Below, one piece after another: positions 12,544-33,666 of a DNA stretch of 64,000 bases. The stretch is from the sequence record MZ475895.1. One strand, given 5' to 3'. Under the pieces are notes generated by a model that searched no databases, was not told the origin of the DNA, and worked only from the letters and a program-made list of their open reading frames with translations. The position numbers and the translations under genes are program-made. Numbering within the stretch: position 1 is the stretch's first letter; every line of letters begins with the position of its first letter.

Positions 12544-13314
12544 ATGAGCAATATCGATACCACAATGCCTGAAGGCAAATGGGAGTTCAATGAGTCGGTT
12601 GCTTGCGTGTTTGATAACATGCTGCAAAACTCTATCCCGTCTTATGGCCGTATGCGTGACCTGACGTATCGTCTGGGTCGTCGCTTCGTAACCCCGGGTT
12701 CAGCTATCGTCGATCTCGGTGCTTCACTCGGCCGAGCTATCGAGCCGTTTGCAAAAGAGTTCGGCAAGTATGACTACCATCATGCTGCTGACGCTCCTGG
12801 CGAAGACTACGAAACAGGCAATCACTATAGCCTGTTCGAAGTAGCGCCTGCGATGCGTGAACGTCTGGTGCAGAATGAAGTGCTCAACTCAGTGAATGCC
12901 AAACTGGAAAGTGAATCGCTGGTAGATACTGACACGTTTATGTTCGACGGTCAGGTGCATTGCTCGTTGATTCTGAGTGTGCTAACTCTCCAGTTCACGC
13001 CGATTGAACATCGTCAACACATTCTGGAAAACGTGTACAACTCACTGCAACCAGGCGGCGCATTCATCCTCGTTGAGAAGGTGTTAGGCGATAACAACTA
13101 TCTCGACAAAATGCTGGTGGACACCTACTACCAAATGAAAGGCGGTAACGGTTACAGCGCCGAGTCGATTGCGACTAAACGTAAGTCACTGGAAGGTGTA
13201 CTCGTTCCTGTTAAAGCAGCGTGGAACGAAGAACTGTTGCGTAAAGCAGGCTTCGGTCAGGTAGAAAGTTTCTATCGCGACCTGAACTTCGCAGGATGGA
13301 TTGCTATTAAGTAA
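12544..13314 (+). CDS. cmoA: CmoA-like carboxy-S-adenosyl-L-methionine synthase
   Basis: WEFNESVACVFDNMLQNSIPSY, IVDLGASLG, TLQF, LQPGGAFILVEK, KRKSLEGVL (conserved Arg), LLRKAGF..NFAGWIAIK. Confidence 0.88.
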   Translation: MSNIDTTMPEGKWEFNESVACVFDNMLQNSIPSYGRMRDLTYRLGRRFVTPGSAIVDLGASLGRAIEPFAKEFGKYDYHHAADAPGEDYETGNHYSLFEVAPAMRERLVQNEVLNSVNAKLESESLVDTDTFMFDGQVHCSLILSVLTLQFTPIEHRQHILENVYNSLQPGGAFILVEKVLGDNNYLDKMLVDTYYQMKGGNGYSAESIATKRKSLEGVLVPVKAAWNEELLRKAGFGQVESFYRDLNFAGWIAIK

Positions 13315-13323
13315 GGAAATACT

Positions 13324-14586
13324 ATGAAAGTAAACGGGCGTATCTTAGCTATCGTCCCACACAAGACAATGCAAGACCGTACCAAGTCGGGTGTGGGTTC
13401 GTACATTGATGGACTAGAGGCATACGGCTTCTGCGACTTTATCACGGACGGAGAGAACAGCTCCGTTGCGAAAAGTCAGTGGTTCACTTACGGTGATACT
13501 ACTCTCAGTGACGGTTATAAGATAGGGCATATCCAGAGCGAGTTGCTGATTGCACTTGAGCGCTTGCCTTACCGTGCGATTATTTGCAGCACGTATGAGG
13601 CGATTGAAGCCTGCGTGTCTCTGGGACTGCCAAAGATTATGCCCGTTTACTATCGCACGCACAACAGCTTTTTGCTCACACAAGATCTCAAGGGTCTTGG
13701 TGCAGAGAAGATCCACCGTGCGTTGTTGCAAGCACGCGTCACAGGGCTGCGCATCCTTGCTAACTGTGATTCGACTGCGATCAATCTTGCTGAGCGCTAT
13801 AAGACGCCAGCACACGTTGCCTACAACTCGTTCTCGGTGCCTGACTACAACCCACCAGCTCGGCGTGTTCCCCAGCTGTTGATTATCTGTCGCTATGAGA
13901 AGGTCAAGCGCACGTTGTTTGCTGCGCGTATTGCTGCTGCATCAGGATTACCCGTTCGTGTTATGACAGGCAGTGATCGTCAAGTACGCAATTGGGAGAA
14001 AGAGCTGGCTGAGGCGGGTGTCAAAGAATACACCGTCGTCAGTGGCCTTAGTGGTAAACAGAAACTCGAATTTATAGGCGCTTGCACAGTAGCCCTTTCT
14101 ACTGCGAGCGTTGAATCTTTTGCTAACGGTGTGCGTGAGTCTATCCCCTACTGTCCTACCTTTATCGTGCAAACATCCAAGTACGATTGGGCTAAGGACT
14201 ATACGCGCTTCTGTACTGCCGACAAGCATGTTCATATCAGAACTGTTGATCGCGTATCGGACCAAGCCGTAGCTGAAATCGGAAGTGAGATAGCGCGAGT
14301 TGCCACCACACGTTATCTGACAGGTCCGCAGCGTAAACAACTACTGACTGCTTGGGCAAAGCAAGTTGATCGTGGTTGGTCCGACTTTGTTCAGAAGGCT
14401 GTTGTTGACGATGACGGCAAGCCGCTGCGCACCGAGCTATATCAAGAACTGATCGACAAATCAGAAATCGATTGGTCACAAACGCCTACGCTAATGCGTA
14501 CTGTAAATGCGTTACATAAATGCCACGCTCGTTTGGGCCTGACATTTGATGGCACTAAAATCAAATATAAGAGGAAGCGCAAATGA
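13324..14586 (+). CDS. GT-B fold (GT4-like) glycosyltransferase
   Basis: YYRTHNS, ILANCDST, IICRYEKVKR, STASVESFANGVRES resembling E-x7-E donor-binding motif. Confidence 0.6.
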   Translation: MKVNGRILAIVPHKTMQDRTKSGVGSYIDGLEAYGFCDFITDGENSSVAKSQWFTYGDTTLSDGYKIGHIQSELLIALERLPYRAIICSTYEAIEACVSLGLPKIMPVYYRTHNSFLLTQDLKGLGAEKIHRALLQARVTGLRILANCDSTAINLAERYKTPAHVAYNSFSVPDYNPPARRVPQLLIICRYEKVKRTLFAARIAAASGLPVRVMTGSDRQVRNWEKELAEAGVKEYTVVSGLSGKQKLEFIGACTVALSTASVESFANGVRESIPYCPTFIVQTSKYDWAKDYTRFCTADKHVHIRTVDRVSDQAVAEIGSEIARVATTRYLTGPQRKQLLTAWAKQVDRGWSDFVQKAVVDDDGKPLRTELYQELIDKSEIDWSQTPTLMRTVNALHKCHARLGLTFDGTKIKYKRKRK

Positions 14587-15659
14587 GTGTTATCGGTGAT
14601 ATTTATAACATACCACAACCTTTCGCAATGTATGTCGGGAATTGTGAGACGCGTGCTCAAGCCAAAGTTGCTGCTGGTACAATCGAGTGGGCGCCAGAGA
14701 AAGTGTGCTGCACCGTAGATGATGGTAACAACCTGTTCCCCAACGTACCTTCAATCAACCCTGCTGACGTGCATAAGACAGATGCAGAAACTTTAGTGAT
14801 TGGCTGTGCACCTTTCGGCGGCCGCATTGACGAGCACATGGACAAAGCTATTCGTAGCGCTATCTATCGTGGACGCAACATTGCTGCTGCTATGCATACG
14901 CGCCTGGCGGATAATCCCGAATACGTTGAGCTGGCTGATCGCTACAACGTCAAGCTGTATGACTTCCGTCATCGTCCTGATGCGTACCCACTTGGTACCG
15001 GTGAGAAGCGTAGCGGTCTGCGTCTGTTAACTGTCGGTACTGATAGCTCCTGCGGCAAGAAGTTTACCACGCTATCTCTGTATCGTGAACTCAAGCGCAT
15101 CCACGCAGACACTGTGTTTTGCTCTACTGGGCAAACAGGCTTCCTGATTAGCGGTTGCGGTATCAACAACGACACGATTGTTGCTGACTTCCTCGCCGGT
15201 GCTGCTGAATCACTTTCGCCTGCTGGTCCTGCTGATCGTATCTATCTGATTGAAGGTCAAGGTGCTATCACTCACCCAGCATACACAGGCGGTAGCATGA
15301 GTCTGATTGCCGGCTCGCAGCCTGATCATCTCATCCTGTGCCACGCATGGAACCGTCAGAATCAGTTGGGCGTTAAGCGTAAGCCTGACCTTGATTTTGA
15401 GATGCGTGCTAATATTGAAGCGGCGCGTATTCACGGTCTCCACCCGACCTACATCGGTATCAGCATTAACTTCTCTGAGTGTGATTTGACACAGGACGAG
15501 CAAGATAAAATCCTGTACCAACTCGCATCAACGTATGAGATTCCCGTGTTCGACCCATCACAAGACACTTCTGTGTTGCGTGACCTCGCTCGTATGTTAG
15601 CAACTAAAGCCAAAGCAAGGAGCCTCGATGGCCAAGCATCCCCTGCGCAAGCTGTTTGA
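14583..15659 (+). CDS. DUF1611 / DgcN-family P-loop protein
   Basis: LVIGCAPFGG, GRNIAAAMH, LLTVGTDSSCGKKFTT, TGQTG, IEGQG, GSQPDHLILCH. Confidence 0.85.
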   Translation: MSVIGDIYNIPQPFAMYVGNCETRAQAKVAAGTIEWAPEKVCCTVDDGNNLFPNVPSINPADVHKTDAETLVIGCAPFGGRIDEHMDKAIRSAIYRGRNIAAAMHTRLADNPEYVELADRYNVKLYDFRHRPDAYPLGTGEKRSGLRLLTVGTDSSCGKKFTTLSLYRELKRIHADTVFCSTGQTGFLISGCGINNDTIVADFLAGAAESLSPAGPADRIYLIEGQGAITHPAYTGGSMSLIAGSQPDHLILCHAWNRQNQLGVKRKPDLDFEMRANIEAARIHGLHPTYIGISINFSECDLTQDEQDKILYQLASTYEIPVFDPSQDTSVLRDLARMLATKAKARSLDGQASPAQAV

Positions 15660-16503
15660 ACAGCATGTGAAAAAAGAAGTGAAAGCAGACAAGGTAGCTG
15701 TGCTGCTTTCATCTGGCCTCGATGGTTTGGTCAGTGCGTTAGCTGCACACGATCTCGGTAAGAAGGTGCACGCCTTCACTTTCCAAATGGGTGACAACCC
15801 TAGCTTTGACAGTCGCCACGCACAGATTGTTGCGCAGAAGATGGGGTGGGAGTTCACTCTCGTTAAAGTTCCCACCAGCGTGTCTGCTATCGCATTAGCG
15901 TGGCGCGTGCTGCATTCCAAGTATCGCTGCATTAAGAAGCGTGACTACGAGTGTGCGTACCCTATGGTCTATTGCTACAAGGCAATCAAAGACGCTGGGT
16001 ACAAGTATGTGCTAAGCGGGCTGGTGGCCGATGGTTACTTCCTGTATAACCGTAACACGCATATTCAGAAAATCAGCGGGCCACACTCTGACGCTCAGAA
16101 GTATCATGAGTTCCGTACTCAATACTTTAGTCCGTGGCTTAAACACGGTAAGAAGTCTCTGGGCGTTGACGGGTATAACCCGAGCGGCATGTTGCAGCAT
16201 GAGATGTTGTGCGATAACTTCGGCCTGATTCACGTTAACCCGTGGATGCAAAACAAGGTGTTTGACTACTTCATCAAATACACTTGGCAGGAGTTGAATC
16301 AGCCTAAGCAGAAGATGCCACTAACCGAAGCGTGGGCAGAACACATTGCTCTTGTTGGTCATCGTCCACACAGGGGCTATCAGACAGAAGCCAAAGTGCC
16401 TGAATACTTTGAGCATCTGATCGAGAACCCTGAGATTAACTTCAACGGGCGCAAGCGCATCATGGACGTGGCACGCGACTGGTCCAAACGAGAGCCTGAA
16501 TAA
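15628..16503 (+). CDS. asparagine-synthetase-like ATP-dependent amide ligase (no glutaminase domain)
   Basis: PP-loop VLLSSGLDG, VLSGLVADGYF (cf. SGEGADELFGGY), NPW, KMPL; 291 aa. Confidence 0.75.
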   Translation: MAKHPLRKLFEQHVKKEVKADKVAVLLSSGLDGLVSALAAHDLGKKVHAFTFQMGDNPSFDSRHAQIVAQKMGWEFTLVKVPTSVSAIALAWRVLHSKYRCIKKRDYECAYPMVYCYKAIKDAGYKYVLSGLVADGYFLYNRNTHIQKISGPHSDAQKYHEFRTQYFSPWLKHGKKSLGVDGYNPSGMLQHEMLCDNFGLIHVNPWMQNKVFDYFIKYTWQELNQPKQKMPLTEAWAEHIALVGHRPHRGYQTEAKVPEYFEHLIENPEINFNGRKRIMDVARDWSKREPE

Positions 16504-16758
16504 ATGCATCCTGTTATCACAGACTTTCTTGGGCCTATCGTTAAGCGGCTGGGCTTATTCACTGCTATATTCGGTTTTGTCGGCGTGCTGCTGTCTGTGA
16601 TCGCAGTGCTTGTGTGCCGCCCAGAAGTCCTTCAATACGAATACGATACTGTAAATAGACTTCGTACTGAGGGTATTGTATTCTTGGGTAAAGGCGCTCT
16701 CGTTTACATCGTAGGCGAGATACTTGAAGGCACGTTCAAGTGGAGAAAAGATGATTAA
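16504..16758 (+). CDS. small membrane protein
   Basis: Two hydrophobic segments. Confidence 0.6.
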   Translation: MHPVITDFLGPIVKRLGLFTAIFGFVGVLLSVIAVLVCRPEVLQYEYDTVNRLRTEGIVFLGKGALVYIVGEILEGTFKWRKDD

Positions 16759-17014
16759 CAAATTCGTGATGAAGAAGACTCCGACCATTGAAGCCTGTCA
16801 GTGGAATGGAGAGAACAAGGAAGAGATTGAAGCCTTCCTTGGCGATAGCGGATTCGTTGTTGGGCGTTACGTGCAGATTGGTGTTCTGGATAAATACCAG
16901 AAGCCAACTATTGCTAACGTAAGCGTAGGCAACTATGTGATCAAGCGCGATGATGGTAAGTTCTATGCCATTACTGCGCAAGATCTGTTTGAGAATTATG
17001 TATTAGCAGATTGA
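16751..17014 (+). CDS. conserved-type small phage protein
   Basis: KKTPTIEACQWNGEN...GNYVIK...FENY pattern; GGAG RBS. Confidence 0.7.
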   Translation: MINKFVMKKTPTIEACQWNGENKEEIEAFLGDSGFVVGRYVQIGVLDKYQKPTIANVSVGNYVIKRDDGKFYAITAQDLFENYVLAD

Positions 17015-17021
17015 GGCCATA

Positions 17022-17474
17022 ATGAATCTGTTTTCTATTTTAAAACAGCAAGTGAAGAAATCCCTGACGACCGAAGCAACGCTTGAGCCAGAAGTGCGCA
17101 AACACTTTGACTGGCGTTTCAGTGTTGACGTCAAAGGTCTGATGTACATTGTAGGCAAGACAGGCGCTAACACCTGCTTCTATCTTGAGCCAGGTCACGT
17201 TGAGCCTACTGCCTGCTATCCTGATGAACTGCTTGCGAAGATTGATAGCTGGGGCGCTGCGAAGTACGTGTCCTACGCTGTCTACTTCAAGAAGTTCAGT
17301 AGCCCTGTAGCTGAGAACATCAAGACGCTTGAGCAGGCCAAGACAGGCAAGCCTAAAGCGTTTAAGAAAGGCTACTTTATCTGTGGCGTAACACCGAAAG
17401 GTAAGCGCGTCAAACTGTGTCGTCTGCACAACAGCCTAAGCGGTATGCAGTGGGTTGATGTAGACCAGAAGTAA
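17022..17474 (+). CDS. hypothetical protein
   Basis: 150 aa, GAGG RBS. Confidence 0.7.
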   Translation: MNLFSILKQQVKKSLTTEATLEPEVRKHFDWRFSVDVKGLMYIVGKTGANTCFYLEPGHVEPTACYPDELLAKIDSWGAAKYVSYAVYFKKFSSPVAENIKTLEQAKTGKPKAFKKGYFICGVTPKGKRVKLCRLHNSLSGMQWVDVDQK

Positions 17475-17488
17475 AACAAGGAGCATAT

Positions 17489-17809
17489 ATGATTAGCGAC
17501 ATTGACATTGGCCATTATTATTGTTCTGCGAGCGGTATACCGTTTCGCGTAAAAGAACGTGCAGCACACGGACAAGATTGTTCTCTGTCGATGATCGTAT
17601 TTGAGAACGTGGAGGCAACTAAGGATTACCCTGTTGGTCAAACTTGGGTGCTTCCAGAATCTCTGTTCGTGAAACAGTATTCCGAATTTACGGAAGGAAA
17701 GTATCATGAACGAAACAACGCTCTTAGAGCATCTGAAAACAAGACACTGGCAACCAGAGAAGCATTTCGGGTGGCTTTCGCCGAAGACCCTGACAGTGCC
17801 ACTGTATAG
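17489..17809 (+). CDS. DUF1653-like SH3-fold protein
   Basis: YY..SG.PFRV..A.H.D....IVF....TWVLP...F pattern; overlaps next gene by about 100 nt. Confidence 0.5.
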   Translation: MISDIDIGHYYCSASGIPFRVKERAAHGQDCSLSMIVFENVEATKDYPVGQTWVLPESLFVKQYSEFTEGKYHERNNALRASENKTLATREAFRVAFAEDPDSATV

Positions 17810-18222
17810 CTTTGACCGACAGATGAGAGGCGTTCAAGTTTATACGCCTAGCGCACCGAAGAAAGACCCGAACCCTAAAGCGTGTCGTTACTTCACTCGC
17901 GTGTTCGGCGGCAAACAGTTGGTGTGGGGAACGGAAATTAGACCTATACGGGCCGACCGTTTTCTTAACTGAGTCTGTGTTTAAAGCGTGTGCGCTGCAT
18001 CGTCTCGGTCTCAATGCTTGGTCTGTTTTAGGCTCGAACGTGAGTGACTATTTATACCACCAGCTTAGTCTTCTTGACCTGCACTTTGTTTGTCTCGGGG
18101 ATGAGGATAAAGCTGGTGAGGAGTTCAGCCAGACGTTTGGTCGTGGTGCTGTTAGTGCCGACTTGGACGAGATGACTGATGAGCAGTTACTTGATTTAAC
18201 TCTACCACTATTAAGGAAATAG
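17706..18222 (+). pseudogene. primase-like TOPRIM protein split by a frameshift near 17937
   Basis: ORF 17706-17972 ends VWGTE; another frame continues LDLYGPTVFLTESVFKACAL...VLGS...LGDEDKAG (TOPRIM E and DxD motifs) to 18222. Confidence 0.7.
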
Positions 18223-18223
18223 G

Positions 18224-18652
18224 ATGGAACATAAAGTTGTCGTGCGTATTCTCGGACCTGTTGGCAGCGGTAAGTCTTCTGTTTACGCCAAGCTCGTTAA
18301 AGGTCTGACTGATACCGGCGCTATCATCAAACACGCAGATGAGCAGGCGTGGAAGATGTTGAACAACAGCGGCGAAGTAACTTCGGCCGACACGGTTCTC
18401 GATGAGTTCCGCACCGAAGTTACCTTCGAAGAAGTTGTGATTCGTGACGACTACACCAAGTCTAAGAATCAGATCATGCAGTTCTTCGCGTACTCGCATC
18501 TACCGCCTAACCTGCAAGCTGTAAGCAAACCGATTGCGTTGCTTGCTCAGGAGATGGACCAGAATCTTCCTGACGGTGCTGAGAAAGCCGCTGGTCTGCG
18601 TAAGCTGCTTGAAGCGAAAGACTGTCTGGTCCGTGCGCTGGTGGCTAAGTAA
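18224..18652 (+). CDS. P-loop-like N-terminus fused to a small helical-hairpin domain
   Basis: GPVGSGKS at N-term; FFAYSHLPPNLQAVSKP...AEKAAGLRKLLEAKDCLVRA at C-term. Confidence 0.7.
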   Translation: MEHKVVVRILGPVGSGKSSVYAKLVKGLTDTGAIIKHADEQAWKMLNNSGEVTSADTVLDEFRTEVTFEEVVIRDDYTKSKNQIMQFFAYSHLPPNLQAVSKPIALLAQEMDQNLPDGAEKAAGLRKLLEAKDCLVRALVAK

Positions 18653-18666
18653 TTCGGAGAGCAAAC

Positions 18667-19056: not shown

Positions 19057-19062
19057 CAACAC

Positions 19063-19088
19063 AAAGGGTGGCTTCGGCTGCCCTTTTT
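19063..19088 (+). terminator. intrinsic terminator
   Basis: AAAGGGTGGC-TTCG-GCTGCCCTTTTT. Confidence 0.85.
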
Positions 19089-19092
19089 CGAT

Positions 19093-19100
19093 CTGTAAAT
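19093..19100 (+). promoter_or_regulatory. CTGTAAAT motif
   Basis: Intergenic, directly after terminator, 31 nt before ATG 19131. Confidence 0.6.
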
Positions 19101-19130
19101 AACTCGTATAACATCTAACGAGAAACTACC

Positions 19131-20368: not shown

Positions 20369-20375
20369 GGTACAA

Positions 20376-22924: not shown

Positions 22925-23309
22925 TCAGTTACGTGATCAATTGACCGAAGCTGAATACGCAGAACTTGAGCGCAAGACAGCACGGTCAATCATGGAACAA
23001 GTGTGGGCACTACGCGGCTGGACGGTTAAGCTCGACTGGTGCAACTATATGTGCGACGACGTTGATTGGTTATTCCATGGTAATGAACGTAAAGCACCGG
23101 TTGATCACGCTATGCCGAATTCTGGTGTTGGCACTAGCATTGAGCAGCATCGCCTTAATGTCGTGTTTACTCCTACTGAGGTTAGCGTTACGAACTCACT
23201 GGTAGACAGCCCTGTCACGGGCACTGGTATGTCACTGCGCTGTGCTTACTGCGCGTGGCTTTTAGAAATCGAAAAACAAAAGGCTGCCAATGCGCTGCAA
23301 TCTGACTGA
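22911..23309 (+). CDS. hypothetical protein
   Basis: 132 aa, TTG start with GGAG RBS. Confidence 0.6.
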   Translation: MSSVNQLRDQLTEAEYAELERKTARSIMEQVWALRGWTVKLDWCNYMCDDVDWLFHGNERKAPVDHAMPNSGVGTSIEQHRLNVVFTPTEVSVTNSLVDSPVTGTGMSLRCAYCAWLLEIEKQKAANALQSD

Positions 23310-23805
23310 ACTGCCTATCAAACTCGATCAGGCTGAAAACATTATGGGCAGCGTGTTTGCGCTTGCTGCTGGCTCCAAGTCCAAACGCCGTGCTACTGCG
23401 GCAATGCTCATTCACTTCCATGAAGGCTACCCTACTATTATCAGTAGTGGTGTCAATGGCACTGTGCCTGGTGAGAGCAACGTGTGTGAGAACGAAGACC
23501 TCACTCTGACGTTTGCACACGTTACACACGCAGAAGCTAACTGCCTCAATCGCATGGATGAATACAGTCTATGGCCAGAAGAAGAGGACATCCTGTTCTG
23601 CACTGACAGTCCATGTCCTGATTGTTTGCAGCAACTCGAATCTGCTGGTGTGCAGACCATCATTTATGCGCGTGAATACAGACTCACAGAGCATCTGGAT
23701 AAGTCTGCTATTCGCATGTATTGTCTCGATATTGAGAACGTGCGGGCGTCTTTGCTGAAATCTGTAAATCGTATAGACGAAGTGATTGCAACCACACCTA
23801 CTTAA
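23290..23805 (+). CDS. dCMP deaminase family protein
   Basis: SGVNG..PG...CE, HAEAN, TDSPCPDC zinc motif. Confidence 0.9.
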   Translation: MRCNLTELPIKLDQAENIMGSVFALAAGSKSKRRATAAMLIHFHEGYPTIISSGVNGTVPGESNVCENEDLTLTFAHVTHAEANCLNRMDEYSLWPEEEDILFCTDSPCPDCLQQLESAGVQTIIYAREYRLTEHLDKSAIRMYCLDIENVRASLLKSVNRIDEVIATTPT

Positions 23806-25133: not shown

Positions 25134-25160
25134 ATGGGGCCTCGTGCCCCATTTCTGTTT
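25134..25160 (+). terminator. intrinsic terminator
   Basis: ATGGGGC-CTCGT-GCCCCAT then TTCTGTTT. Confidence 0.65.
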
Positions 25161-25174
25161 CTCGGAGAGATGCT

Positions 25175-27414: not shown

Positions 27415-27728
27415 CACCTCTTATTATGTTTGACGCACGGACCATTCGTGTGCTCAAGCAAAGTTTCGGTCAGGACAAGCCTTTTGTTGTTGCCGGGCTA
27501 AACCCAATAGTTGGCAACAAAGGTGATCGTGTTACTCTCGCTAATGCCTGTAGCGTAGTCGCCATCCCTCGTGTGATGGGACTTGAAGTAGGCCAAGTGC
27601 TTTACGTAGGCACGGATGATGAAGTCTACGCATGGCCTTCTGATATGGTGATGGAATTTGCTTCTGTCTCTGATAACCAAACTCGGACCATTGCTTATGC
27701 ATTGCGTCCAATACTTTCGGATGATTAA
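27411..27728 (+). CDS. hypothetical protein
   Basis: GGAG RBS, ATG 27411. Confidence 0.65.
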   Translation: MTPLIMFDARTIRVLKQSFGQDKPFVVAGLNPIVGNKGDRVTLANACSVVAIPRVMGLEVGQVLYVGTDDEVYAWPSDMVMEFASVSDNQTRTIAYALRPILSDD

Positions 27729-27730
27729 AA

Positions 27731-28831
27731 ATGACAGGTCCTCTCGATCTCACTAACCCACAGCACTTCGAACTGTACTCGCTGCACAGTGTTGATGCAC
27801 AGTATATCAATCTGTGTGACGCACTCCTAACGCAGGGTACGCACGAATCTGACCCAGAGCGCACTGACGATACGTGGCATACGCTGATCGGTATTGGCTT
27901 CCAGTTGTCTAACACCAACATCGCTTTCCCTGCGCTGCTGTCTAAGCGTGTCAACGTCCGTGCAGCTATCGATGAATCCTGCTGGTTCGCACGCGGTGAA
28001 ACGAACATCGCAACTCTCGGTTCTAAAATCTGGAACGAGTGGGCAGATGAAGAAGGTGAGAACGGTCCTATCTACGGCTTCCAGTACCGTAACTGGCCTG
28101 ACATTAAAGTGTTCAACACTGTCGAAGGCATGATTGAGCAGCACATCCCACCAGCGATGATTGAGCGCATCTCGAAAGAGATTAACCGCATGAAGGCGCA
28201 GGGCTATATCGAAACTGCGTTGCCTGACGGTCGCGTGTTGTACGAAGGCTATATCGATCAGTACGCTGATGCACTGCGTCAAATCATGGCGCGTAGTCGT
28301 AGCCGCCGCATTCGTGTGCAAGCGTTCAACCCAGGTTACGTTGGTATGCAGAGCCTGCCGCCGTGTCATACCGAGTTTGAGTTCAACGTGACCAAAGCCA
28401 CTGCGTATGAGATTGCGCAGATGGAAGCACGCTCAATGCGCCCTGACGCTGACTCACTGCATATCGTGGTGACGATGCGCAGCAATGACGCGCTATTGGG
28501 CAGGCCCTTCAATATCGTGGGCTACAGCGCCATGCACCAGTTGTTTGCGAAGTGGGCTGGTCTGAACGTTGGTTCGTTTACTCTGAACGTGACCAATATG
28601 CACATGTACGATCACCACCGCGAAGCGTATGCACAACAGCGTGAGCAGTGGCTGGAGCTACAGACGCAGATGCAGACGACAGGCAAACCTGTTGTTTACC
28701 CTACCCTCGAAATCACTGACGACATTCTGGGCCTGACGCCAGAAGAGCTGCTGGATAACGTCAACGTCGATTGGTTCGAGCTGGTGGACTACTCTCCTAA
28801 ACCTGCTGTTAAAGGACGCGTAACCAAATGA
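27731..28831 (+). CDS. thyA: thymidylate synthase
   Basis: IWNEWAD, GPIYGFQYR, SRR, LPPCH, MRSND.LLG.PFN, NMHMY. Confidence 0.95.
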   Translation: MTGPLDLTNPQHFELYSLHSVDAQYINLCDALLTQGTHESDPERTDDTWHTLIGIGFQLSNTNIAFPALLSKRVNVRAAIDESCWFARGETNIATLGSKIWNEWADEEGENGPIYGFQYRNWPDIKVFNTVEGMIEQHIPPAMIERISKEINRMKAQGYIETALPDGRVLYEGYIDQYADALRQIMARSRSRRIRVQAFNPGYVGMQSLPPCHTEFEFNVTKATAYEIAQMEARSMRPDADSLHIVVTMRSNDALLGRPFNIVGYSAMHQLFAKWAGLNVGSFTLNVTNMHMYDHHREAYAQQREQWLELQTQMQTTGKPVVYPTLEITDDILGLTPEELLDNVNVDWFELVDYSPKPAVKGRVTK

Positions 28832-29490
28832 TGCTAATCAGCCGCATTGCTGCATTCCTGTATGTTGGATATGCAGAGTCAGTGGAGGACATTCCACGTT
28901 TGCTCGTCGAAAAAGTTAAGGTGCGCATCGAAGATCCCGATTGGGACCCGTTTGATGACGTTACCGTTGAAGATGCACCGCCTATCCTAGAAATGACAGG
29001 CAAGGTCATCTATCATCTGCCACTCAACTGCTTCCTGATTGACGGTCGCATGGAGCAGGATGAATCGTCCGAAGATACGCTCAAGATGCAGAAGCATTGT
29101 CAGACCAACTTCTTCAAGCACAAGCAGACACGCAACGGTCGTGTGGGCATTGCCGTGGACAGCATGATCAGAGAACTGTCTTATGCAGAGGCACAGCACC
29201 CTAACTGGCCTACTGAGCCGCTGCACGCTGGCGCTATCCTCGCAGAAGAAGCAGGTGAGTGTCTGCGTGATTGCGTGTCATACGATGAAACAGGGCGTGA
29301 TGACCTGCTAGCCTCTATGGCCGAAGAAGCTGTGCAGACAGGTGCGATGGCGATTCGTTTTCTGATCAATGCGCATCGTTCTAAAGAGCGCACGCTGCCT
29401 CGCTCTACAGTACGTGACCTGCTGTCAGACACGTCCATTCCTTTGGCTGAGCGTGTTGCTAAACTTCTTGATGTGGTGGACGCTAAATGA
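28828..29490 (+). CDS. protein with C-terminal MazG-like NTP pyrophosphohydrolase domain
   Basis: ILAEEAGE...EEAVQTGAMAIRFL. Confidence 0.6.
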   Translation: MMLISRIAAFLYVGYAESVEDIPRLLVEKVKVRIEDPDWDPFDDVTVEDAPPILEMTGKVIYHLPLNCFLIDGRMEQDESSEDTLKMQKHCQTNFFKHKQTRNGRVGIAVDSMIRELSYAEAQHPNWPTEPLHAGAILAEEAGECLRDCVSYDETGRDDLLASMAEEAVQTGAMAIRFLINAHRSKERTLPRSTVRDLLSDTSIPLAERVAKLLDVVDAK

Positions 29491-30398
29491 AACTACTTGC
29501 ACTTATCCCATCTGCTACCACCAATGTGTTCCGCACGCTGCATTGTGTAGGCACGGCAGAAGAGTTCCCTGTAGGCGAGCATCCTAAGTGGTCTGGCTTT
29601 GGTTTGAATATGACTAACGTCAAAATCATTCCTGACCTGGCTAAAGACGCCGTGCCTGATTCGTTCTATGTCACTATCGATAGCCACCTCGACTGGTCTG
29701 TTGATCTTGATCGTATCGATACGTTCAGCGCTGATTATCTCATCTGGTGCGGTAAGCATACGCCTTCAATTGAAGCTGTGCTCGAAGCCCACATGATTAA
29801 AGGCCAGTTGCCAAATCTGGTGCAGGACTTCGATGCTTTTGTCGCTGATCTGCAAGAGCGTCTGGACAACATGACCAGCCTCGCTAAAGATCGTATGACC
29901 ATCTCAGGCAGCACGCTGATCGATAGCGACACCACAGCCAAGTACAACCTGTGGGCTATCTATCGTCACTGTCTGATGTTAGACAACAAGATGGTCCTGC
30001 TGTACGGTAAAGACAATCACATCCATGTGTCCGACACGCACGTATCTGAAAAGGGTATCGGCTGGTGGTTGACCGAGCACAACAAACACATGATGAGCAT
30101 TGCACAGCAAAACGATCTGCTTGCCGCTTACATTACGTTTGAACGCGATAGCTCTGGCTATACGTTTGTTGGTGCTGACGGTACTCAGGTTAAACGTCCT
30201 GTCGAAAGCAGCGAGTTCATGCACATGGCGCATCACGGCCTGTTCCCTAAAGTTGTAGTGCGTGAAGACGCAGACGGCCGTAACTTCGAACTGTCGTTTG
30301 ATTACGCCGAATACTTCCCACAAGCGTATCACGATTTTGTCAATCATGCGTGGGCCGGCCGTTCTGATCGTTCACGCGATTTGGTTCGCTTCATCTGA
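29487..30398 (+). CDS. hypothetical protein
   Basis: 303 aa, ATGA overlap. Confidence 0.75.
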   Translation: MKLLALIPSATTNVFRTLHCVGTAEEFPVGEHPKWSGFGLNMTNVKIIPDLAKDAVPDSFYVTIDSHLDWSVDLDRIDTFSADYLIWCGKHTPSIEAVLEAHMIKGQLPNLVQDFDAFVADLQERLDNMTSLAKDRMTISGSTLIDSDTTAKYNLWAIYRHCLMLDNKMVLLYGKDNHIHVSDTHVSEKGIGWWLTEHNKHMMSIAQQNDLLAAYITFERDSSGYTFVGADGTQVKRPVESSEFMHMAHHGLFPKVVVREDADGRNFELSFDYAEYFPQAYHDFVNHAWAGRSDRSRDLVRFI

Positions 30399-30420
30399 TC
30401 GTCGCGCTGTCTGCTGTCAG

Positions 30421-30426
30421 TAATTT
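30421..30426 (+). promoter_or_regulatory. TAATTT intergenic motif
   Basis: 24 nt upstream of ATG 30450. Confidence 0.45.
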
Positions 30427-30449
30427 GAAGCTACTATAGGAGACAGCGC

Positions 30450-30788
30450 ATGAAATATGATAAGACCAAAGACTACCAACCGTTCAAGTATCTTGAGCCA
30501 GACCCAAAGGCTCCAAGAGTAGGCTTCTACGGTTCGACTGGCCACACTATCACAAAGGACGTTCTGATAGGGCAGGACGTATGCGAGTTTGAGTTCAAGC
30601 CCGAAGAGTTGAACAATATGAATCGCGGTACGTTGCTCTTCCGTGCTAAAGATAGTGGCGGAACTATTGTCGTAAAGAAATGCTCTGTGCTTGGATTGAA
30701 AATGGTAATTACGCTAGAGAGAAGGGTGATTCAGTTCGGCAAGGTTCAAGCTGAATGGATGACCACATCCCGACTGTATAACTACTAA
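30450..30788 (+). CDS. hypothetical protein
   Basis: 112 aa, AGGAG RBS. Confidence 0.7.
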   Translation: MKYDKTKDYQPFKYLEPDPKAPRVGFYGSTGHTITKDVLIGQDVCEFEFKPEELNNMNRGTLLFRAKDSGGTIVVKKCSVLGLKMVITLERRVIQFGKVQAEWMTTSRLYNY

Positions 30789-30830
30789 CTGTAAATACAT
30801 TGTACAGAAGCAACTACAAGAGAAAAGAGA

Positions 30831-31529
30831 ATGGCAAAAATTGCTAAAGCAAAGGAAGGGAAAAAGAAAAGCAACCCTATGTTGATTGACCTGAAAAAGT
30901 TCAAGTCAGTTAAACAGCTTAAGGGTGCGAAGTACAACCCTCGTTTCATTACAGACAGCCGACTGAGAGCGCTCGAAGGTTCTTTGGGCAGCTTCGGTGA
31001 TTTGTCTGGCGTGGTGTTCAACAACAGCGTAGACAGTGGCGTGCTGATCTCAGGCCACCAGCGTCTCAAGTCGATTGAGAAGTGGGACTCGCGCATTGAG
31101 ATTCAGCAAACGTCTGACAAGTACGGCACGGTAGCGCTGGGTTATATCCATGCCACCAGCGCCAAAGGTAAAACGATCAGCATCCCACTGCGTATCGTTA
31201 ACTGGTCAGATAAGAAAGTGGAGTTTGCTGCTAACATTGCTGCGAATGCCCACGGCGGTGAGTTCGATAACAAAAAGCTCGCGTCACTTGTCGAGAAGCT
31301 GGACCTGACTACAATCAAGCCAGCACTTATCGGGCTTGACCCGTTAGAGATTCGCGGCCTGCAACAGACGCTGAGCAAACAAGCTATCGTCGAGCAGGAA
31401 AAGCGTGTTGGTAAAACAACAGGCAAAATGAACGGCAGCACCGGCGAGTTCAAAGAGTACACGACTGATGAAGTTGGTACTGCGCTGACCTGCACCTGCC
31501 CACGTTGTGGCTTTAAGTTCGAGGGATAA
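30831..31529 (+). CDS. ParB/Srx N-terminal-domain protein with C-terminal zinc ribbon
   Basis: KYNPRFI...SLGSFG...VVFN...ISGHQRL; NIAAN..GGEFD..KL; CTCPRCGFKF. Confidence 0.85.
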   Translation: MAKIAKAKEGKKKSNPMLIDLKKFKSVKQLKGAKYNPRFITDSRLRALEGSLGSFGDLSGVVFNNSVDSGVLISGHQRLKSIEKWDSRIEIQQTSDKYGTVALGYIHATSAKGKTISIPLRIVNWSDKKVEFAANIAANAHGGEFDNKKLASLVEKLDLTTIKPALIGLDPLEIRGLQQTLSKQAIVEQEKRVGKTTGKMNGSTGEFKEYTTDEVGTALTCTCPRCGFKFEG

Positions 31530-31530
31530 C

Positions 31531-33666
31531 ATGATCATCAAGCCGCCTACAATGAAAGAGATTAATAAGCTGCCCAAGCCTTGGTCAGGTATGAGTTTCT
31601 TTGCAGGTTGCGGTGGTTCATCTACCGGTCACAAGATGGCCGGTATTAACATCCTACTGAGCAACGAGTTCGTGGACGCGGCTCGTGAATCGTATGAAGC
31701 GAACCATCCAACAACCAAAGTGTTGCCCCACGATATTCGTCGTCTTGACCCGAAAAAGCTGCTTAGCTATTGCGGCCTGAGCCAAGGCGAACTGGACTTG
31801 CTTGACGGCAGTCCTCCGTGCTTTACCGAAGACACGTTCATTCATACTGACACTGGTATGAAGTTCATCACTGATATGCGCATCGGTGACTTCGCTATGA
31901 CCTCTGTTGGTAAGTATCATCCTGTGTATGACACGATGGTGCGCCCGTATGACGGTCAGATGCACAGAATTGAAACGCTGCTCGGTCAGAACAATGCAAC
32001 ACCTGAGCATCCATTCTTTGTTCGTCGTCAGAATGAAGAAACTGGCGGGTACAGTGAGCCGTTCTGGTGTGACGCTAAAGATGTGCAGGAAGGCGATTTG
32101 TTGGGTACGCCTCGTGTTACGCCTGACATGGGTGAAGCACACACGCATGAGATTATCTCGTCGTTGACTGCGCAGCTTGTGCGTTGGATTGCATTGCCTG
32201 AGTTTTGGTGGCTGATTGGTCACTGGTGCAATCGCGGTGCAATCGATAAGATTCGTGGTGTCGATGTTATTCAGTTCACCTCGATGACAGCGATGGAAAA
32301 CTCGCTGGTGGAACAAGCGTTCGACGTGCTCAAGTTAAGCAGCATCAACAGCGCTTCGTCCGACATGGGCGTTCACCGTAAGACCGTCCGTGTTGTTATG
32401 GACACAGACCTGTTGCTGTTCTTGCGTATGTTTATCGCACAGGGCAAGAAGTCTATGTCCCGCCGTATGCCAGGCATGATCTTCCATCTGGCCAAAGAGC
32501 TGAAACAGCAATTCATTCTCGGCTATCTGGGTCGTGATTACGTCACAGCAATGGGCGTTGGTCATGCGTTAGAGGCTGACTCAAAGCGCTTCCTCGTTGA
32601 GATGAATTACCTGTGCTGCTCTGCGTTCAACAGACCGCTGTTCGATGCAATGTTGTTCACTGACTTGCATTACGGCAGTCCTATGTTACCGCCGAGTCGC
32701 TTCATCACCAAAGAGCACATTGGCTTCCTGTTCTTACAAGAAGAGGTTAATTTCTTCTTTGAGTTCGAGCCGGAAGACCCGCATCTGTGGGTAGAAGTGA
32801 TTGAGAACTTTACGCACCATGAAACGTGCAACGTCTACAACTTCTCAGTCAGTGTTGATGAGACGTATGTTGCTAACGGTATGGTCGTGCATAACTGCAA
32901 AGGGTTCTCGACTGCGGGTGTGAAAGAAGACGGCTGGGGCAAAGAGGTTAAGTACAGCGGCAACAAGTATCAGCAAGTCGATGACCTGTTCGATCAGTAT
33001 TGCCGTATGCTCAAGCACATGCAGCCTAAAACGTTCACTGCGGAAAACGTTAGTGGCCTCGTTAAAGGTGCGTCGAAGGGTTACTTCATTGAAATCATGA
33101 AGACCTTTGATCAGCTAGGCTACTATGTGCGAGCACCGTTGCTTAATGCTGCGTGGCTCGGTGTGCCTCAGTCGCGTGAGCGTATCATCTTTATGGGTGT
33201 GCGCAAAGACGTGGCTAAAGCACTCGGCTATAAGACTGCGTTGACTGCTGTGCCTGATGTAACACCTCAATCAAGCATGGCGTTCCTTGCAGATGCACTG
33301 CCGAACATTCGTCGGTATAAAGGTACGGAGCGTGACATTATCAAGTATCTGCCTGCTGTTAACGGGCCGATGCCTACGATTACCGCTGCTGACGCTATCG
33401 CATACGAAACAGCACGCTTCTCCTCTGCTGGCTTCATTGAAGACGACAAAGGGCACAGACGCAAGCTGACGATTGACGAACTCAAAGTTGTATCAGGCAT
33501 GCCTAGTGATTACGTGCTCACAGGTAAGTTTGAAGAACAATGGGAACGTCTCGGTCGTGTGTGCGTACCTGCAATGACGTGTGCAGCGGCAAGCGCGTTG
33601 ATACGCCATGTGCTTGAGCCGTACGCGAAGCTGCGTAAAAAGAAACCTGGGGATCGTTTTCGTTAA
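31531..33666 (+). CDS. C5-cytosine DNA methyltransferase homologue, intein-containing; probable carboxymethyltransferase
   Basis: FAGCGG (I), NEF (II), DI (III), GSPP/CKGFS (IV), ENV (VI), PQSRER (VIII), motif X reads RLGRVCVP; GAGG RBS before ATG 31531. Confidence 0.9.
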   Translation: MIIKPPTMKEINKLPKPWSGMSFFAGCGGSSTGHKMAGINILLSNEFVDAARESYEANHPTTKVLPHDIRRLDPKKLLSYCGLSQGELDLLDGSPPCFTEDTFIHTDTGMKFITDMRIGDFAMTSVGKYHPVYDTMVRPYDGQMHRIETLLGQNNATPEHPFFVRRQNEETGGYSEPFWCDAKDVQEGDLLGTPRVTPDMGEAHTHEIISSLTAQLVRWIALPEFWWLIGHWCNRGAIDKIRGVDVIQFTSMTAMENSLVEQAFDVLKLSSINSASSDMGVHRKTVRVVMDTDLLLFLRMFIAQGKKSMSRRMPGMIFHLAKELKQQFILGYLGRDYVTAMGVGHALEADSKRFLVEMNYLCCSAFNRPLFDAMLFTDLHYGSPMLPPSRFITKEHIGFLFLQEEVNFFFEFEPEDPHLWVEVIENFTHHETCNVYNFSVSVDETYVANGMVVHNCKGFSTAGVKEDGWGKEVKYSGNKYQQVDDLFDQYCRMLKHMQPKTFTAENVSGLVKGASKGYFIEIMKTFDQLGYYVRAPLLNAAWLGVPQSRERIIFMGVRKDVAKALGYKTALTAVPDVTPQSSMAFLADALPNIRRYKGTERDIIKYLPAVNGPMPTITAADAIAYETARFSSAGFIEDDKGHRRKLTIDELKVVSGMPSDYVLTGKFEEQWERLGRVCVPAMTCAAASALIRHVLEPYAKLRKKKPGDRFR
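31819..32895 (+). mobile_element. intein (359 aa) with degenerate LAGLIDADG-like region, inserted before the catalytic Cys
   Basis: CFTEDTFI start, ATPEHPF block B, VYNFSV..YVANGMVVHN end, +1 Cys. Confidence 0.93.

Follow-up and report, generated by a model that had tools for sequence, protein, structure and literature searches.

The two loci described here, found in the first 64 kb of the Erwinia amylovora jumbo phage pEa_SNUABM_14 (record MZ475895.1; this whole stretch of DNA is called the window), likely encode a post-replicative pathway of cytosine hypermodification, in which at least two tailoring enzymes would be added to the CmoA/CmoX/CmoY scheme. To judge from these genes, the DNA of the phage probably holds a cytosine derivative so far undescribed. 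The first locus (12544-17474) is a single operon, with overlapping or abutting genes throughout, that comprises a CmoA homologue, a GT-B (GT4-like) glycosyltransferase, a DUF1611/DgcN-like protein and a CmoY-like ligase. The second locus (30831-33666), separated from the first by 17 kb, is formed by a ParB-like gene followed by an intein-bearing C5-methyltransferase, the CmoX homologue. All features given below lie on the + strand, and all the genes discussed are annotated as hypothetical in the record. At both loci the genes lie at the positions given in the original prediction.

The cyanophage system cited there was described correctly: CmoA makes carboxy-SAM (Cx-SAM), CmoX forms 5-carboxymethylcytosine (5cxmC) in duplex DNA, and glycine is joined to 5cxmC as an amide by CmoY, ParB-domain genes being often adjacent (Yang et al., Nat Commun 2025, PMC12783734). 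The glycine amide of 5cxmC in Synechococcus phage S-B43, the source of this system, is a dC+115 species. In pEa_SNUABM_14 the predicted carboxy-SAM synthase (256 aa, 12544..13314) matches TIGR00740 (1.2e-39), phrog_4752 (6e-78) and PDB 4gek (E 4e-28). It scores 136 bits on TIGR00740, under the NCBI curated equivalog cut-off of 193 bits, and has 28% identity with SpCmoA, the assayed enzyme (E 9e-24); its best matches are CmoA models, and 26 alignment columns do not vary between it, E. coli CmoA and SpCmoA. The predicted DNA cytosine-C5 carboxymethyltransferase (31531..33666, intein included; PF00145, 6e-38) has SpCmoX (PDB 8yf3) as its best solved relative by far (1.8e-54, versus 1e-16 for M.HaeIII). 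The Arg that had been noticed in place of the motif-X Asn is indeed there, as R684, and aligns with R350 of SpCmoX; together with the catalytic Cys, ENV and QxRxR, the G-R684 pair is invariant in seven homologues including SpCmoX. All the sequence features used for CmoX in PMC12783734 are present in the protein.

Directly ahead of it, the ParB-N-like protein (232 aa, 30831..31529) matches phrog_620 (2.3e-31) and phrog_498, a ParB fused to a DNA methyltransferase (1.7e-17), with no match in Pfam. Homologues with 42-45% identity stand directly upstream of CmoX in PaBG and in the phages L006, L008 and L028. The third enzyme of the scheme is a candidate AMP-forming amide ligase of the asparagine-synthase C-terminal type (291 aa, 15628..16503; PF00733, 1.7e-13), 33% identical to the assayed SpCmoY (E 1.5e-48). 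It consists of the PP-loop domain, the glutaminase domain being absent; the PP-loop S28-x-G30-x-D32 is kept, and its subtype has an insert and a conserved block of its own. We think it very likely that these three proteins carry out the chemistry predicted for CmoA, CmoX and the ligase.

Two further enzymes of the operon are candidates for tailoring. The glycosyltransferase (420 aa, 13324..14586) has no match among Pfam, NCBI and PHROG profiles, and was assigned from an AlphaFold (AF2) model (pLDDT 81), which in Foldseek matches GT4-type GT-B glycosyltransferases only (best GlgM, BshA, MshA and SenB, E 1e-10 to 1e-8) and in BFVD matches phage GT1/GT4 proteins. Its motif E264-x7-E272 is invariant in eight relatives. 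The DUF1611/DgcN-like P-loop protein (358 aa, 14583..15659), a predicted N-acyltransferase whose gene overlaps its neighbours on both sides, matches PF07755 (1.4e-46) and PF17396 (5.7e-18), its P-loop (G152..G158-K159) being invariant. Its closest named family is the N-acetyltransferase DgcN (NF041892, 4.9e-85) and its nearest structure is PDB 7xrj (6.8e-50). Since it reaches 285 bits on NF041892, under the equivalog cut-off of 480 bits, the phage protein is not DgcN itself.

The operon continues with three smaller genes. An 84-aa ORF (16504..16758), with no family match and no similarity to AD1_019, occupies a place that is taken by a 206-aa gene in relatives. The penultimate ORF (87 aa, 16751..17014; phrog_36935, 1.3e-44) is conserved with 66-69% identity in AD1, Y3 and SNUABM_3, and has a weak match (0.0034) to a nucleotide pyrophosphohydrolase PHROG. 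The last one encodes a 150-aa protein (17022..17474) without Pfam match, for which the AF2 model reaches a pLDDT of only 65 and Foldseek returns nothing at E<=1e-3. It appears associated with the module, as its homologues have CmoA or the ligase for a neighbour in PaBG (33% identity), L002 (47%), L007 (29%) and L028 (35%).

The co-occurrence of these families in relatives, which had been proposed as a check, takes the form of conserved operon linkage in distant phages. Metagenomic phages have the two loci joined in a single operon of the type ParB-CmoX-(CmoA)-GT-DUF1611-(alanine-racemase-like)-ligase-(CmoA), where GT is the glycosyltransferase. The order is ParB-CmoX-GT-DUF1611-ligase-CmoA in L006, L007 and L008, and ParB-CmoX-CmoA-GT-DUF1611-racemase-ligase-g23 in L028. 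Other arrangements are found in L002 (CmoA-GT-DUF1611-racemase-ligase-DAHP synthase-g23), in L025 and L027 (GT-DUF1611-ligase) and in L026 (DUF1611-racemase-ligase); the DAHP synthase of L002 fits with prephenate supply. Part of this linkage could be due to common descent of related jumbo phages, although the gene order varies. 

The main alternative is that the core trio of CmoA, CmoX and ligase is all that acts on DNA, with a simple 5cxmC amide like that of S-B43 as the product, while the glycosyltransferase and the DgcN-like protein act on a metabolite, an envelope component or a protein and share with the trio only the transcription unit. DgcN is known to act on a free amino acid, enzymes with small-molecule acceptors (BshA, MshA and GlgM) provide the nearest GT4 structures, neither gene is present in Y3 and PaBG, and the glycosyltransferase is absent from Alexandra and AD1, which do have DUF1611. 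However, in phages whose versions of these proteins are only 25-60% identical, both genes lie between CmoX and the ligase or CmoA, with overlapping reading frames in L006-L008 and L028. Moreover, DUF1611 precedes the ligase of the window type in every context recovered (at least eight lineages) and never precedes the Y3/PaBG subtype, and within the phage collection it is found only in Erwinia and Dickeya phages that bear CmoA and CmoX. We consider this alternative unlikely. That both tailoring enzymes belong to the same pathway and lead to a different base, as originally proposed, is supported by their operon position in relatives and is, on balance, probable. The presence of DUF1611 without the glycosyltransferase in Alexandra and AD1 implies that neither enzyme has to work on the product of the other.

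A second alternative, to which we give a low probability, is that the pathway is vestigial, either because the intein-bearing methyltransferase is not matured or because the cassette is a recombinant without racemase, so that the DNA would be unmodified or carry an intermediate only. The methyltransferase is interrupted: the "spliced" enzyme of the original prediction corresponds to an intein of 359 residues (31819..32895; PF14890, PF13403) that splits the catalytic motif directly before the catalytic Cys, in a single uninterrupted ORF without stop codon or frameshift. The N-extein (31531..31818, motifs I-III, ending in GSPP) is 54% identical to SpCmoX residues 20-97, and its match stops exactly where that of the C-extein starts in intein-less genes. 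The C-extein (32896..33666), delimited by alignment, carries the catalytic Cys, motifs IV-X, the target-recognition region and Arg684, with 47-49% identity to the metagenomic and PaBG homologues and 31-34% to SpCmoX. Intein-less alleles are found in L008, L028, PaBG and S-B43, and L006 has an intein at the same site that is only 19% identical.

The cassette is also mosaic, and cultured relatives present four variants of it (Y3; AD1/Alexandra; pEa_SNUABM_3; pEa_SNUABM_14). The glycosyltransferase is 80% identical to that of the SNUABM_3 clade; the DUF1611 protein is closer to the Alexandra clade (75-77% identity) than to the SNUABM_3 clade (57%). The alanine-racemase-like gene of several relatives is missing from pEa_SNUABM_14. 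Against loss of function, every ORF of the pathway is intact, the translated intein keeps Cys1, the T-x-x-H block, the terminal His-Asn and Cys+1, and it is retained in AD1, Y3 and SNUABM_3 (62-66% identical, the exteins 77-91%). The same cassette is shared by nine near-identical isolates, and D-Ala and D-Glu are available from the host, whose cells supply them for peptidoglycan synthesis.

The least credible explanation, that the CmoA homologue boosts cmo5U in host tRNA and the methyltransferase is an ordinary SAM-dependent 5mC methylase against restriction, at functionally unrelated loci, would agree with the name of tRNA methyltransferase that RefSeq and PHROGs give to the CmoA homologue, with the CmoB encoded by the host and with the 17 kb distance, but the methyltransferase has Arg where SAM-dependent enzymes carry Asn and is far nearer to SpCmoX than to any methylase, Cx-SAM is the sole cofactor accepted by wild-type SpCmoX (PMC12783734), a search of the phage records of the collection found no CmoB homologue, and the loci are fused in PaBG, L006-8, L028 and S-B43 and show the same pattern of presence and absence. 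Records with CmoA are as numerous as those with a close CmoX homologue (Erwinia 48, Dickeya 2, Yersinia 1). The ParB-like gene, the methyltransferase, the asparagine synthase and the CmoA-like methyltransferase are in AD1 and Y3 and are all absent from their relative JA11 (Day et al. 2018, Table 5).

For the hypermodification pathway that we favour, we infer the chemical steps, their order and their substrates from the homologies, catalytic motifs, operon structure and linkage observed. CmoA would convert SAM and prephenate into carboxy-SAM. Excision of the intein would be required first for the second step, rebuilding motif IV around the catalytic Cys; the spliced CmoX would then transfer the carboxymethyl group to cytosine C5 in duplex phage DNA, giving 5cxmC, probably with the assistance of the ParB-like protein on DNA. 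In the third step the PP-loop ligase would adenylate the carboxylate of 5cxmC and form an amide with an amine, probably not glycine. A D-amino acid or a derivative is favoured, as the racemase-like gene of several relatives and the likeness to DgcN point to one; it would come from the host pool in pEa_SNUABM_14, or from the racemase in relatives carrying one. This participation of a D-amino acid is a tentative proposal. The DgcN-like protein would N-acylate the amino-acid moiety, either before ligation (as free D-amino acid) or after it. DgcN uses a free amino acid and acetyl-CoA, so that acting on DNA would be new for a protein of this kind; and since a plain alpha-amino acid has one amine only, to combine ligation with N-acylation would take a diamino compound, unless the logic is another. 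Finally, the GT4 enzyme would attach a sugar. No hydroxymethylase is present, the ThyA homologue passing the thymidylate-synthase cut-off, and therefore the acceptor cannot be 5hmC and would sit on the carboxymethyl-amide arm. The end product is probably a glycosylated, N-acylated (D-)amino-acid amide of 5cxmC, whose bulk would shield the DNA from host nucleases.

Comparison with known systems helps in delimiting what may be new. S-B43 has the same three enzyme families, a ParB-domain gene adjoining CmoX and no CmoB, and its CmoX (8YF3) has in common with the pEa_SNUABM_14 homologue the catalytic SPPC motif as well as the Arg to which the carboxylate of Cx-SAM binds. In contrast to S-B43, the genes of pEa_SNUABM_14 are in two loci 17 kb apart, CmoX has an intein at the catalytic Cys, the ligase is a separate subtype always paired with DUF1611, and the module has as extra genes the GT4 enzyme, the DgcN-like protein and the conserved 150-aa protein; relatives add an alanine-racemase-like gene, a DAHP synthase or a 2OG-Fe(II) oxygenase. 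The tailoring set thus differs from the cyanophage one, as had been claimed, and because of these differences a product other than the 5cxmC-glycine amide is expected. In the main text of Yang et al. 2025 and the supplements covered, the words glycosyltransferase, DUF1611, Erwinia and intein are absent.

As for the tailoring enzymes, we take DgcN to be the D-glutamate N-acetyltransferase of the DgcN-DgcA pathway of D-glutamate catabolism (NF041892; 7XRJ). The phage protein shares its two-domain DUF1611 architecture from end to end (its residues 10-327 aligning with 2-320 of 7xrj) and the conserved P-loop; unlike DgcN, its neighbours are the ligase, plus the racemase in relatives, in a phage operon predicted to modify DNA, and not DgcA. 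The glycosyltransferase has the GT-B fold and E-x7-E motif of retaining GT4 enzymes such as BshA, MshA, GlgM and SenB, although it is only 11-17% identical to solved glycosyltransferases, with TM-scores of 0.5-0.6. Phage DNA glycosyltransferases act on 5hmC or 5hmU, those of T-even phages decorating a pyrimidine C5 substituent, and the pEa_SNUABM_14 enzyme would do likewise. Phages SP10, PhiW-14 and ViI have hypermodified thymidines bearing amino acids or polyamines, made by pathways that start from 5-hydroxymethyl-dU, with kinases or pyrophosphorylated intermediates. The proposed pathway would resemble them in the post-replicative addition of amino-acid-like groups to a C5 handle and in restriction evasion, whereas its handle would be a carboxymethyl group placed on cytosine by a methyltransferase homologue and activated by adenylation.

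The intergenic regions contain two promoter-like motifs. The TAATTT motif, noted at the head of both loci, is present and conserved at 12505 and 30421, GTAATTT being kept at both sites in AD1, Y3 and pEa_SNUABM_3, but the second copy heads a 112-aa gene rather than ParB, and the motif is not specific to these loci. There are 13 copies in the window versus 24 expected, nine of them within the approximately 4.7% of it called non-coding; TAATTT is a genome-wide intergenic signal, not private to the two loci, and its sharing is weak support for a private regulon. The first copy (12504..12516), some 35 nt before the CmoA start, is part of ACGGTAATTT, kept in AD1, Y3 and pEa_SNUABM_3. At the second site, GTAATTT (30420-30426) is in the loop of a hairpin (30400..30449; dG -24.7 kcal/mol, z -4.4), whose 3' arm holds the Shine-Dalgarno sequence of the 112-aa gene; AD1, Y3 and SNUABM_3 have equivalent hairpins with different stem sequences. 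The 112-aa ORF (30450..30788), with no family match, has 61-64% identity at the same position in these three phages. The other class, CTGTAAATA, stands directly upstream of the ParB-like gene (30789..30797) and occurs six times in the window, each time on the + strand, versus 1.03 expected, one of the copies being inside the 84-aa ORF at 16649. Upstream of ParB, CTGTAAA is kept in AD1, Y3 and SNUABM_3.

The jumbo phage pEa_SNUABM_14, a myovirus with a genome of 264 kb, infects Erwinia amylovora. It is closely related to phages of Alexandravirus and Sasquatchvirus (Alexandra, AD1, Y3 and many pEa_SNUABM isolates) and more distantly to Pseudomonas phage PaBG. Every gene between 9 kb and 36.5 kb is annotated as 'hypothetical protein' in record MZ475895.1, and a search of the literature found no study of DNA modification in phages of this group. 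The original prediction had placed a cytosine hypermodification pathway in two loci and had pointed to a cyanophage CmoA/CmoX/CmoY system that makes 5-carboxymethylcytosine (5cxmC) and amidates it with glycine. Homology matches confirm the genes reported at both loci, and the cyanophage system is as described by Yang et al. for Synechococcus phage S-B43 (PMC12783734). In that phage CmoA makes Cx-SAM, CmoX uses Cx-SAM as its sole accepted donor to form 5cxmC at GC sites of duplex DNA, and CmoY attaches glycine to it; the resulting 5gcxmC was found in virion DNA. The same work lists 5,615 candidate CmoX sequences, often with adjacent CmoA, ligase and ParBc genes, and notes ligase clusters with other pockets (PMC12783734). 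That work, of December 2025, is the first report of 5cxmC as a natural base; the glycine amide is the single product downstream of it described there, and the search for others is explicitly urged. The core of the pathway proposed here belongs to this published kind. The main text of PMC12783734 makes no mention of Erwinia, jumbo phages, glycosyltransferase, DUF1611 or inteins, and the accessible part of its supplements holds no mention of Erwinia, glycosyl, acetyltransferase, DUF1611 or intein.

The first locus consists of seven plus-strand genes, overlapping or abutting, from 12544 to 17474. It opens with a CmoA homologue (12544-13314, +), which matches TIGR00740 (1.2e-39), PDB entry 4gek (4e-28) and phrog_4752 (6e-78). 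TIGR00740 is still its best family at 136.4 bits, a score that stays under the equivalog cut-off of 193.3 bits since about 19 inserted residues break the match in two. In an alignment of eight sequences that includes the assayed CmoA enzymes of E. coli (taken from MG1655) and S-B43, 26 columns are invariant, with the blocks S-x-P-x-Y, D-x-G-x-S-x-G, T-x-x-F, E-K and a C-terminal A-G-F. Residue R199 of E. coli CmoA was dropped as a defining residue, since the active S-B43 enzyme, SpCmoA, has Glu in this column; the window protein has Arg.

The second locus begins with a ParB-like gene (30831-31529, +; PHROGs 2.3e-31, no Pfam ParB match), followed by a C5-methyltransferase gene (31531-33666, +; PF00145 6e-38) for a homologue of CmoX. 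Among solved structures, the best match of this protein is 8YF3, the structure of S-B43 CmoX (SpCmoX), at 1.8e-54, with M.HaeIII next at 1e-16. An intein of 359 aa (31819-32895, +) is encoded in frame within this gene, which reads through as a single ORF; the N- and C-exteins were kept as separate queries in all searches and alignments. In the C-extein alignment of seven homologues, SpCmoX included, the catalytic Cys, F-S, E-N-V, Q-x-R-x-R and G-R are all invariant; in C-extein numbering these are E50-N51-V52 and Q92-x-R94-x-R96, with the cytosine-contacting Glu and Arg, and G220-R221. Arg684 is aligned with Arg350 of SpCmoX, at the position where SAM-dependent enzymes have the motif X Asn. 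In SpCmoX, this Arg contacts the carboxylate of Cx-SAM (PMC12783734). The target-recognition region of the window protein cannot be aligned with that of SpCmoX, so that its site may differ from the GC of S-B43.

The intein has Cys1, a T-x-x-H block, a terminal His-Asn and Cys+1. Its match to PF14890 and PF13403 lies below their cut-offs (34.8 of 35.8 bits), and its endonuclease part matches no Pfam family. Empty-site alleles of CmoX occur in S-B43, PaBG and the metagenomic contigs L008 and L028, where the two extein queries match adjacent codons; as they abut exactly, the boundaries of the window intein are confirmed. The insertion lies exactly before the catalytic cysteine, with ...GSPP ending the N-extein and Cys464 opening the C-extein to complete the S-P-P-C motif, so that the catalytic Cys doubles as the +1 splice residue. 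This documents a DNA-modifying enzyme whose catalytic cysteine is the site of an intein insertion. The metagenomic contig L006 has an intein at the same CmoX site (8137-9288), only 19% identical to that of the window and with a LAGLIDADG-like match.

The fourth gene of the first locus (15628-16503, +) encodes a ligase with the asparagine-synthase C-terminal PP-loop domain (PF00733, 1.7e-13) and without a glutaminase domain, in which the PP-loop residues S28-x-G30-x-D32 are kept. It is 33% identical to the S-B43 ligase SpCmoY over 275 residues (E 1.5e-48). Two ligase subtypes can be distinguished, each about 33% identical to SpCmoY, namely the window type and the Y3/PaBG type. In the window type about 14 residues are inserted and a conserved block is present, neither of which SpCmoY has; this suggests a substrate other than glycine. 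In all gene contexts recovered, a DUF1611 gene accompanies the window type and never the Y3/PaBG type.

This DUF1611 gene is the third of the operon (14583-15659, +; DUF1611_N, PF17396, 5.7e-18, and DUF1611, PF07755, 1.4e-46), and its protein has the P-loop architecture of DgcN, with 7xrj as the nearest structure (6.8e-50 over 318 residues). The nearest named family is the N-acetyltransferase DgcN (NF041892, 4.9e-85), for which it scores 285.4 bits against an equivalog cut-off of 480 bits; judged by this score, it is a relative of DgcN and not DgcN itself. DgcN catalyzes the acetyl-CoA-dependent N-acetylation of a D-amino acid. In four lineages (pEa_SNUABM_3, locus L012, 6324-7259; metagenomic contigs L002, 12322-13287, L026, 7099-8001, and L028, 7055-8032) an alanine/serine-racemase-like gene for 300-325 aa stands beside the DUF1611 gene, between it and the ligase. 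No racemase was found anywhere in the genomes of the window clade (nine records). A scan of IMG/VR with the DUF1611 alignment returned just the known Erwinia/Dickeya phages and one 268-kb metagenomic genome.

The second gene (13324-14586, +) had been predicted to encode a GT-B glycosyltransferase, and the structural evidence bears this out. Its sequence has no family match in Pfam, NCBIfam, PHROGs or PDB; Pfam Glycos_transf_1 (PF00534) was not matched, with just a weak precomputed match in the relative P0007, and its relatives are limited to seven clusters among 5.8 billion proteins. The AlphaFold (AF2) model (pLDDT 81, pTM 0.81) has two Rossmann-like domains in a GT-B arrangement. Among the 50 PDB matches listed, nearly all are GT-B glycosyltransferases or pseudo-glycosyltransferases with probability 1.00, including the GT4-type GlgM, BshA, MshA and SenB at E values of 1e-10 to 1e-8; in BFVD, phage GT1/GT4 proteins were matched. 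The E-x7-E motif of the C-terminal domain (E264, E272) is invariant in eight relatives with identity down to 37%.

In independent contigs of metagenomic phages, proteins 25-60% identical to those of the window are flanked by the same genes. The contigs L006, L007 and L008 have the order ParB, CmoX, GT (the glycosyltransferase), DUF1611, ligase, CmoA and a homologue of gene 23, the 150-aa protein of the window, whereas L028 has ParB, CmoX, CmoA, GT, DUF1611, racemase-like gene, ligase and g23 homologue. The co-occurrence of CmoA, CmoX, GT, DUF1611 and ligase, which the original prediction had named as a check, is found in these contigs within one operon. In L002 the order is CmoA, an 84-aa gene, GT, DUF1611, racemase-like gene, ligase, DAHP synthase and g23 homologue; L025 and L027 have GT, DUF1611 and ligase, and L026 has DUF1611, racemase-like gene and ligase. 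From these orders it follows that the two window loci form one functional unit, which happens to be divided in the Erwinia phages. GT and DUF1611 lie inside this CmoX/CmoA/ligase unit, and wherever a GT gene occurs, DUF1611 comes directly after it. The glycosyltransferase and the DUF1611 enzyme could still act on some other target, but both genes are positioned inside the CmoX-ligase operon and the pairing of ligase and DUF1611 is strict.

It could also be that CmoA serves tRNA and that the methyltransferase is an ordinary methylase. The methyltransferase, however, carries the Arg signature and resembles SpCmoX, and the two loci are fused in relatives and absent together elsewhere. Among phages of Erwinia, Dickeya and Yersinia, the numbers of records with a CmoA homologue (48, 2 and 1) equal those with a close CmoX homologue. 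Table 5 of Day et al. (2018) gives the ParB-like 'repressor', cytosine methyltransferase, asparagine synthase and CmoA-like methyltransferase as common to AD1 and Y3, and all four as missing from the relative JA11. No CmoB homologue was found in phage records except in one 3.4-kb fragment resembling Salmonella DNA. The pathway could also be vestigial in this phage, but the open reading frames are intact, the splicing residues of the intein are preserved and the cassette is conserved in many isolates. The interpretation as a tailored 5cxmC pathway is supported as far as evidence of sequence reaches.

Around this core the cultured relatives differ in their tailoring genes. The nine records of the window clade have CmoA, GT, DUF1611 and ligase; the pEa_SNUABM_3 clade has a racemase-like gene in addition to these four; the Alexandra/AD1 type has CmoA, DUF1611 and ligase; and the Y3 type has CmoA, a divergent ligase and a 2OG-Fe(II) oxygenase. 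In Y3 this oxygenase (locus L011, 5595-6233) stands in place of DUF1611 and GT and accompanies the other ligase subtype, which implies yet another derivative of 5cxmC. In PaBG the unit is a compact core of ParB, CmoX, CmoA, g23 and ligase, so that the 150-aa protein (17022-17474 in the window) can be counted as a conserved member of the module. Homologues accompany the CmoA module in PaBG, L002, L007, L028, Yersinia phage fHe-Yen9-02 and every one of the Erwinia relatives. It has no Pfam match and, with a poor model (pLDDT 65), no Foldseek match at E<=1e-3; we regard it as a candidate uncharacterised component of the pathway.

A comparison of 13324-15659 indicates recombination inside the operon. 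The window GT is about 80% identical to that of the pEa_SNUABM_3 clade. Its DUF1611 neighbour, by contrast, shares 57% identity with this clade and 75-77% with the Alexandra clade, which has no GT; being closest to different clades, the two neighbours point to a mosaic cassette. The DUF1611-racemase-ligase trio of L026 comes from a 168-kb contig (JBOFUQ010000052.1) of a 'Bacteroidales' MAG (GCA_051652665.1), with a ligase 70% identical to that of the Erwinia phages. The contig carries genes for Phage_gp49_66, a Dam-type methylase and dCMP deaminase, and it is probably a jumbo-phage contig that was wrongly binned. In L027, a metagenomic relative of 224 kb, the ligase is followed two genes on by a GNAT acetyltransferase (9192-10100, 302 aa), which may be a further tailoring enzyme.

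The DAHP synthase of L002 (14162-15025) is of the AroFGH type and N-terminally short (TIGR00034, 180 bits; cut-off 173). This enzyme performs the first step of the shikimate pathway, and prephenate is the co-substrate of CmoA, so its place inside the modification operon fits a need of supply. We think that it probably feeds prephenate to CmoA, which would make it a phage-carried shikimate-pathway enzyme apparently feeding Cx-SAM synthesis.

By homology to the assayed enzymes, CmoA would make Cx-SAM, the spliced CmoX would place a carboxymethyl group on cytosine C5 in duplex DNA, and the ligase would adenylate the carboxylate of 5cxmC and then form an amide. The later steps are proposed from family and gene context. 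The amine would be other than glycine; N-acylation of the amino acid, perhaps before its ligation, would fall to the DUF1611 enzyme, and glycosylation to the GT4 enzyme. A simple alpha-amino acid has one amine, which is a difficulty for ligation followed by acetylation. Favoured building blocks are D-amino acids and, as alternatives, diamino or hydroxy amino acids. A D-amino acid is suggested by the activity of DgcN and by the racemase-like gene between DUF1611 and ligase in four lineages. The end product would probably be a base undescribed so far. We tentatively propose, as possible rather than probable, that the virion DNA of the pEa_SNUABM_14 clade carries cytosine with a C5-carboxymethyl handle and an amide-linked D-amino acid that is N-acylated and glycosylated. 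To our knowledge, no D-amino acid has been described in a natural DNA base before, no DUF1611 enzyme in the modification of nucleic acids and no DNA glycosylation built on anything but a hydroxymethyl pyrimidine; this base would be the first case of each.

If the proposal is right, four natural cassette variants of cultured Erwinia/Dickeya jumbo phages each give a different base. Nine isolates of the window cassette type and dozens of close relatives are available in culture, and because their cassettes differ gene by gene, mass spectrometry of their DNA side by side would show which gene accounts for which chemical step. Three families, the DUF1611/DgcN-like, the alanine-racemase-like and the GT4 glycosyltransferase, are newly linked to DNA hypermodification. 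The DNA of these Erwinia phages is probably heavily modified, and since they are under development against fire blight, this bears on their sequencing and on how they cope with host restriction.

A TAATTT motif had been proposed as a common head of the two loci. Copies are present at 12505 and 30421, but the signal is not private to these loci, and the copy at 30421 precedes a conserved 112-aa gene rather than ParB. The extended GTAATTT is kept at both places in AD1, Y3 and pEa_SNUABM_3. Over the window TAATTT is depleted about two-fold (13 copies, 24 expected), yet nine of the 13 copies fall in the approximately 4.7% called intergenic (binomial P about 1e-9), for example at 5314, 12505, 30421, 37923 and 38782 on the plus strand and 17935, 47655, 50802 and 57631 on the minus strand. 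Such a distribution looks like a genome-wide promoter-like signal, and it suggests a phage promoter element avoided within genes. A private two-locus motif, GTAATTT..GAAG, was rejected; its expectation of 0.08 is circular, as the two sites themselves had supplied the pattern, and GTAATTT alone has four copies for six expected. A sigma-70 promoter scan of the operon gave four matches against 7.8 in shuffles and none on the plus strand, so that host-type promoters are not evident.

The window also has a ThyA homologue (27731-28831), with a dCMP deaminase homologue (23290-23805) upstream of it. Insertions bring this ThyA homologue to 366 aa, some 100 residues above the usual length. It was considered as a pyrimidine hydroxymethylase and dropped; it passes the thymidylate-synthase cut-off and is treated as an ordinary ThyA. 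Two conserved genes of no assigned function (28828-30398) follow it in all relatives. The 112-aa gene is preceded by a hairpin (30400-30449; -24.7 kcal/mol, z -4.4) whose loop contains GTAATTT and whose 3' arm holds that gene's Shine-Dalgarno sequence in paired form. Equivalent hairpins with different stem sequences are present in AD1, Y3 and pEa_SNUABM_3 (z -3.2 to -4.8 across the four phages), as given by single-sequence folds, the alignment mis-registering the 3' arm in consensus folding. The hairpin may serve translational control or be part of a structured promoter region. A further motif, CTGTAAATA (CTGTAAAYA), has six copies in the window for 1.03 expected, all on the plus strand (7744, 16649, 19093, 30789, 35905 and 44539), one directly upstream of ParB and one within the CmoA operon, ahead of its last two genes. 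At 19057-19101 and 35869-35913 the motif is preceded by a nearly identical terminator-like hairpin (GGGTGGCTTCGGCTGCCCTTTTT).
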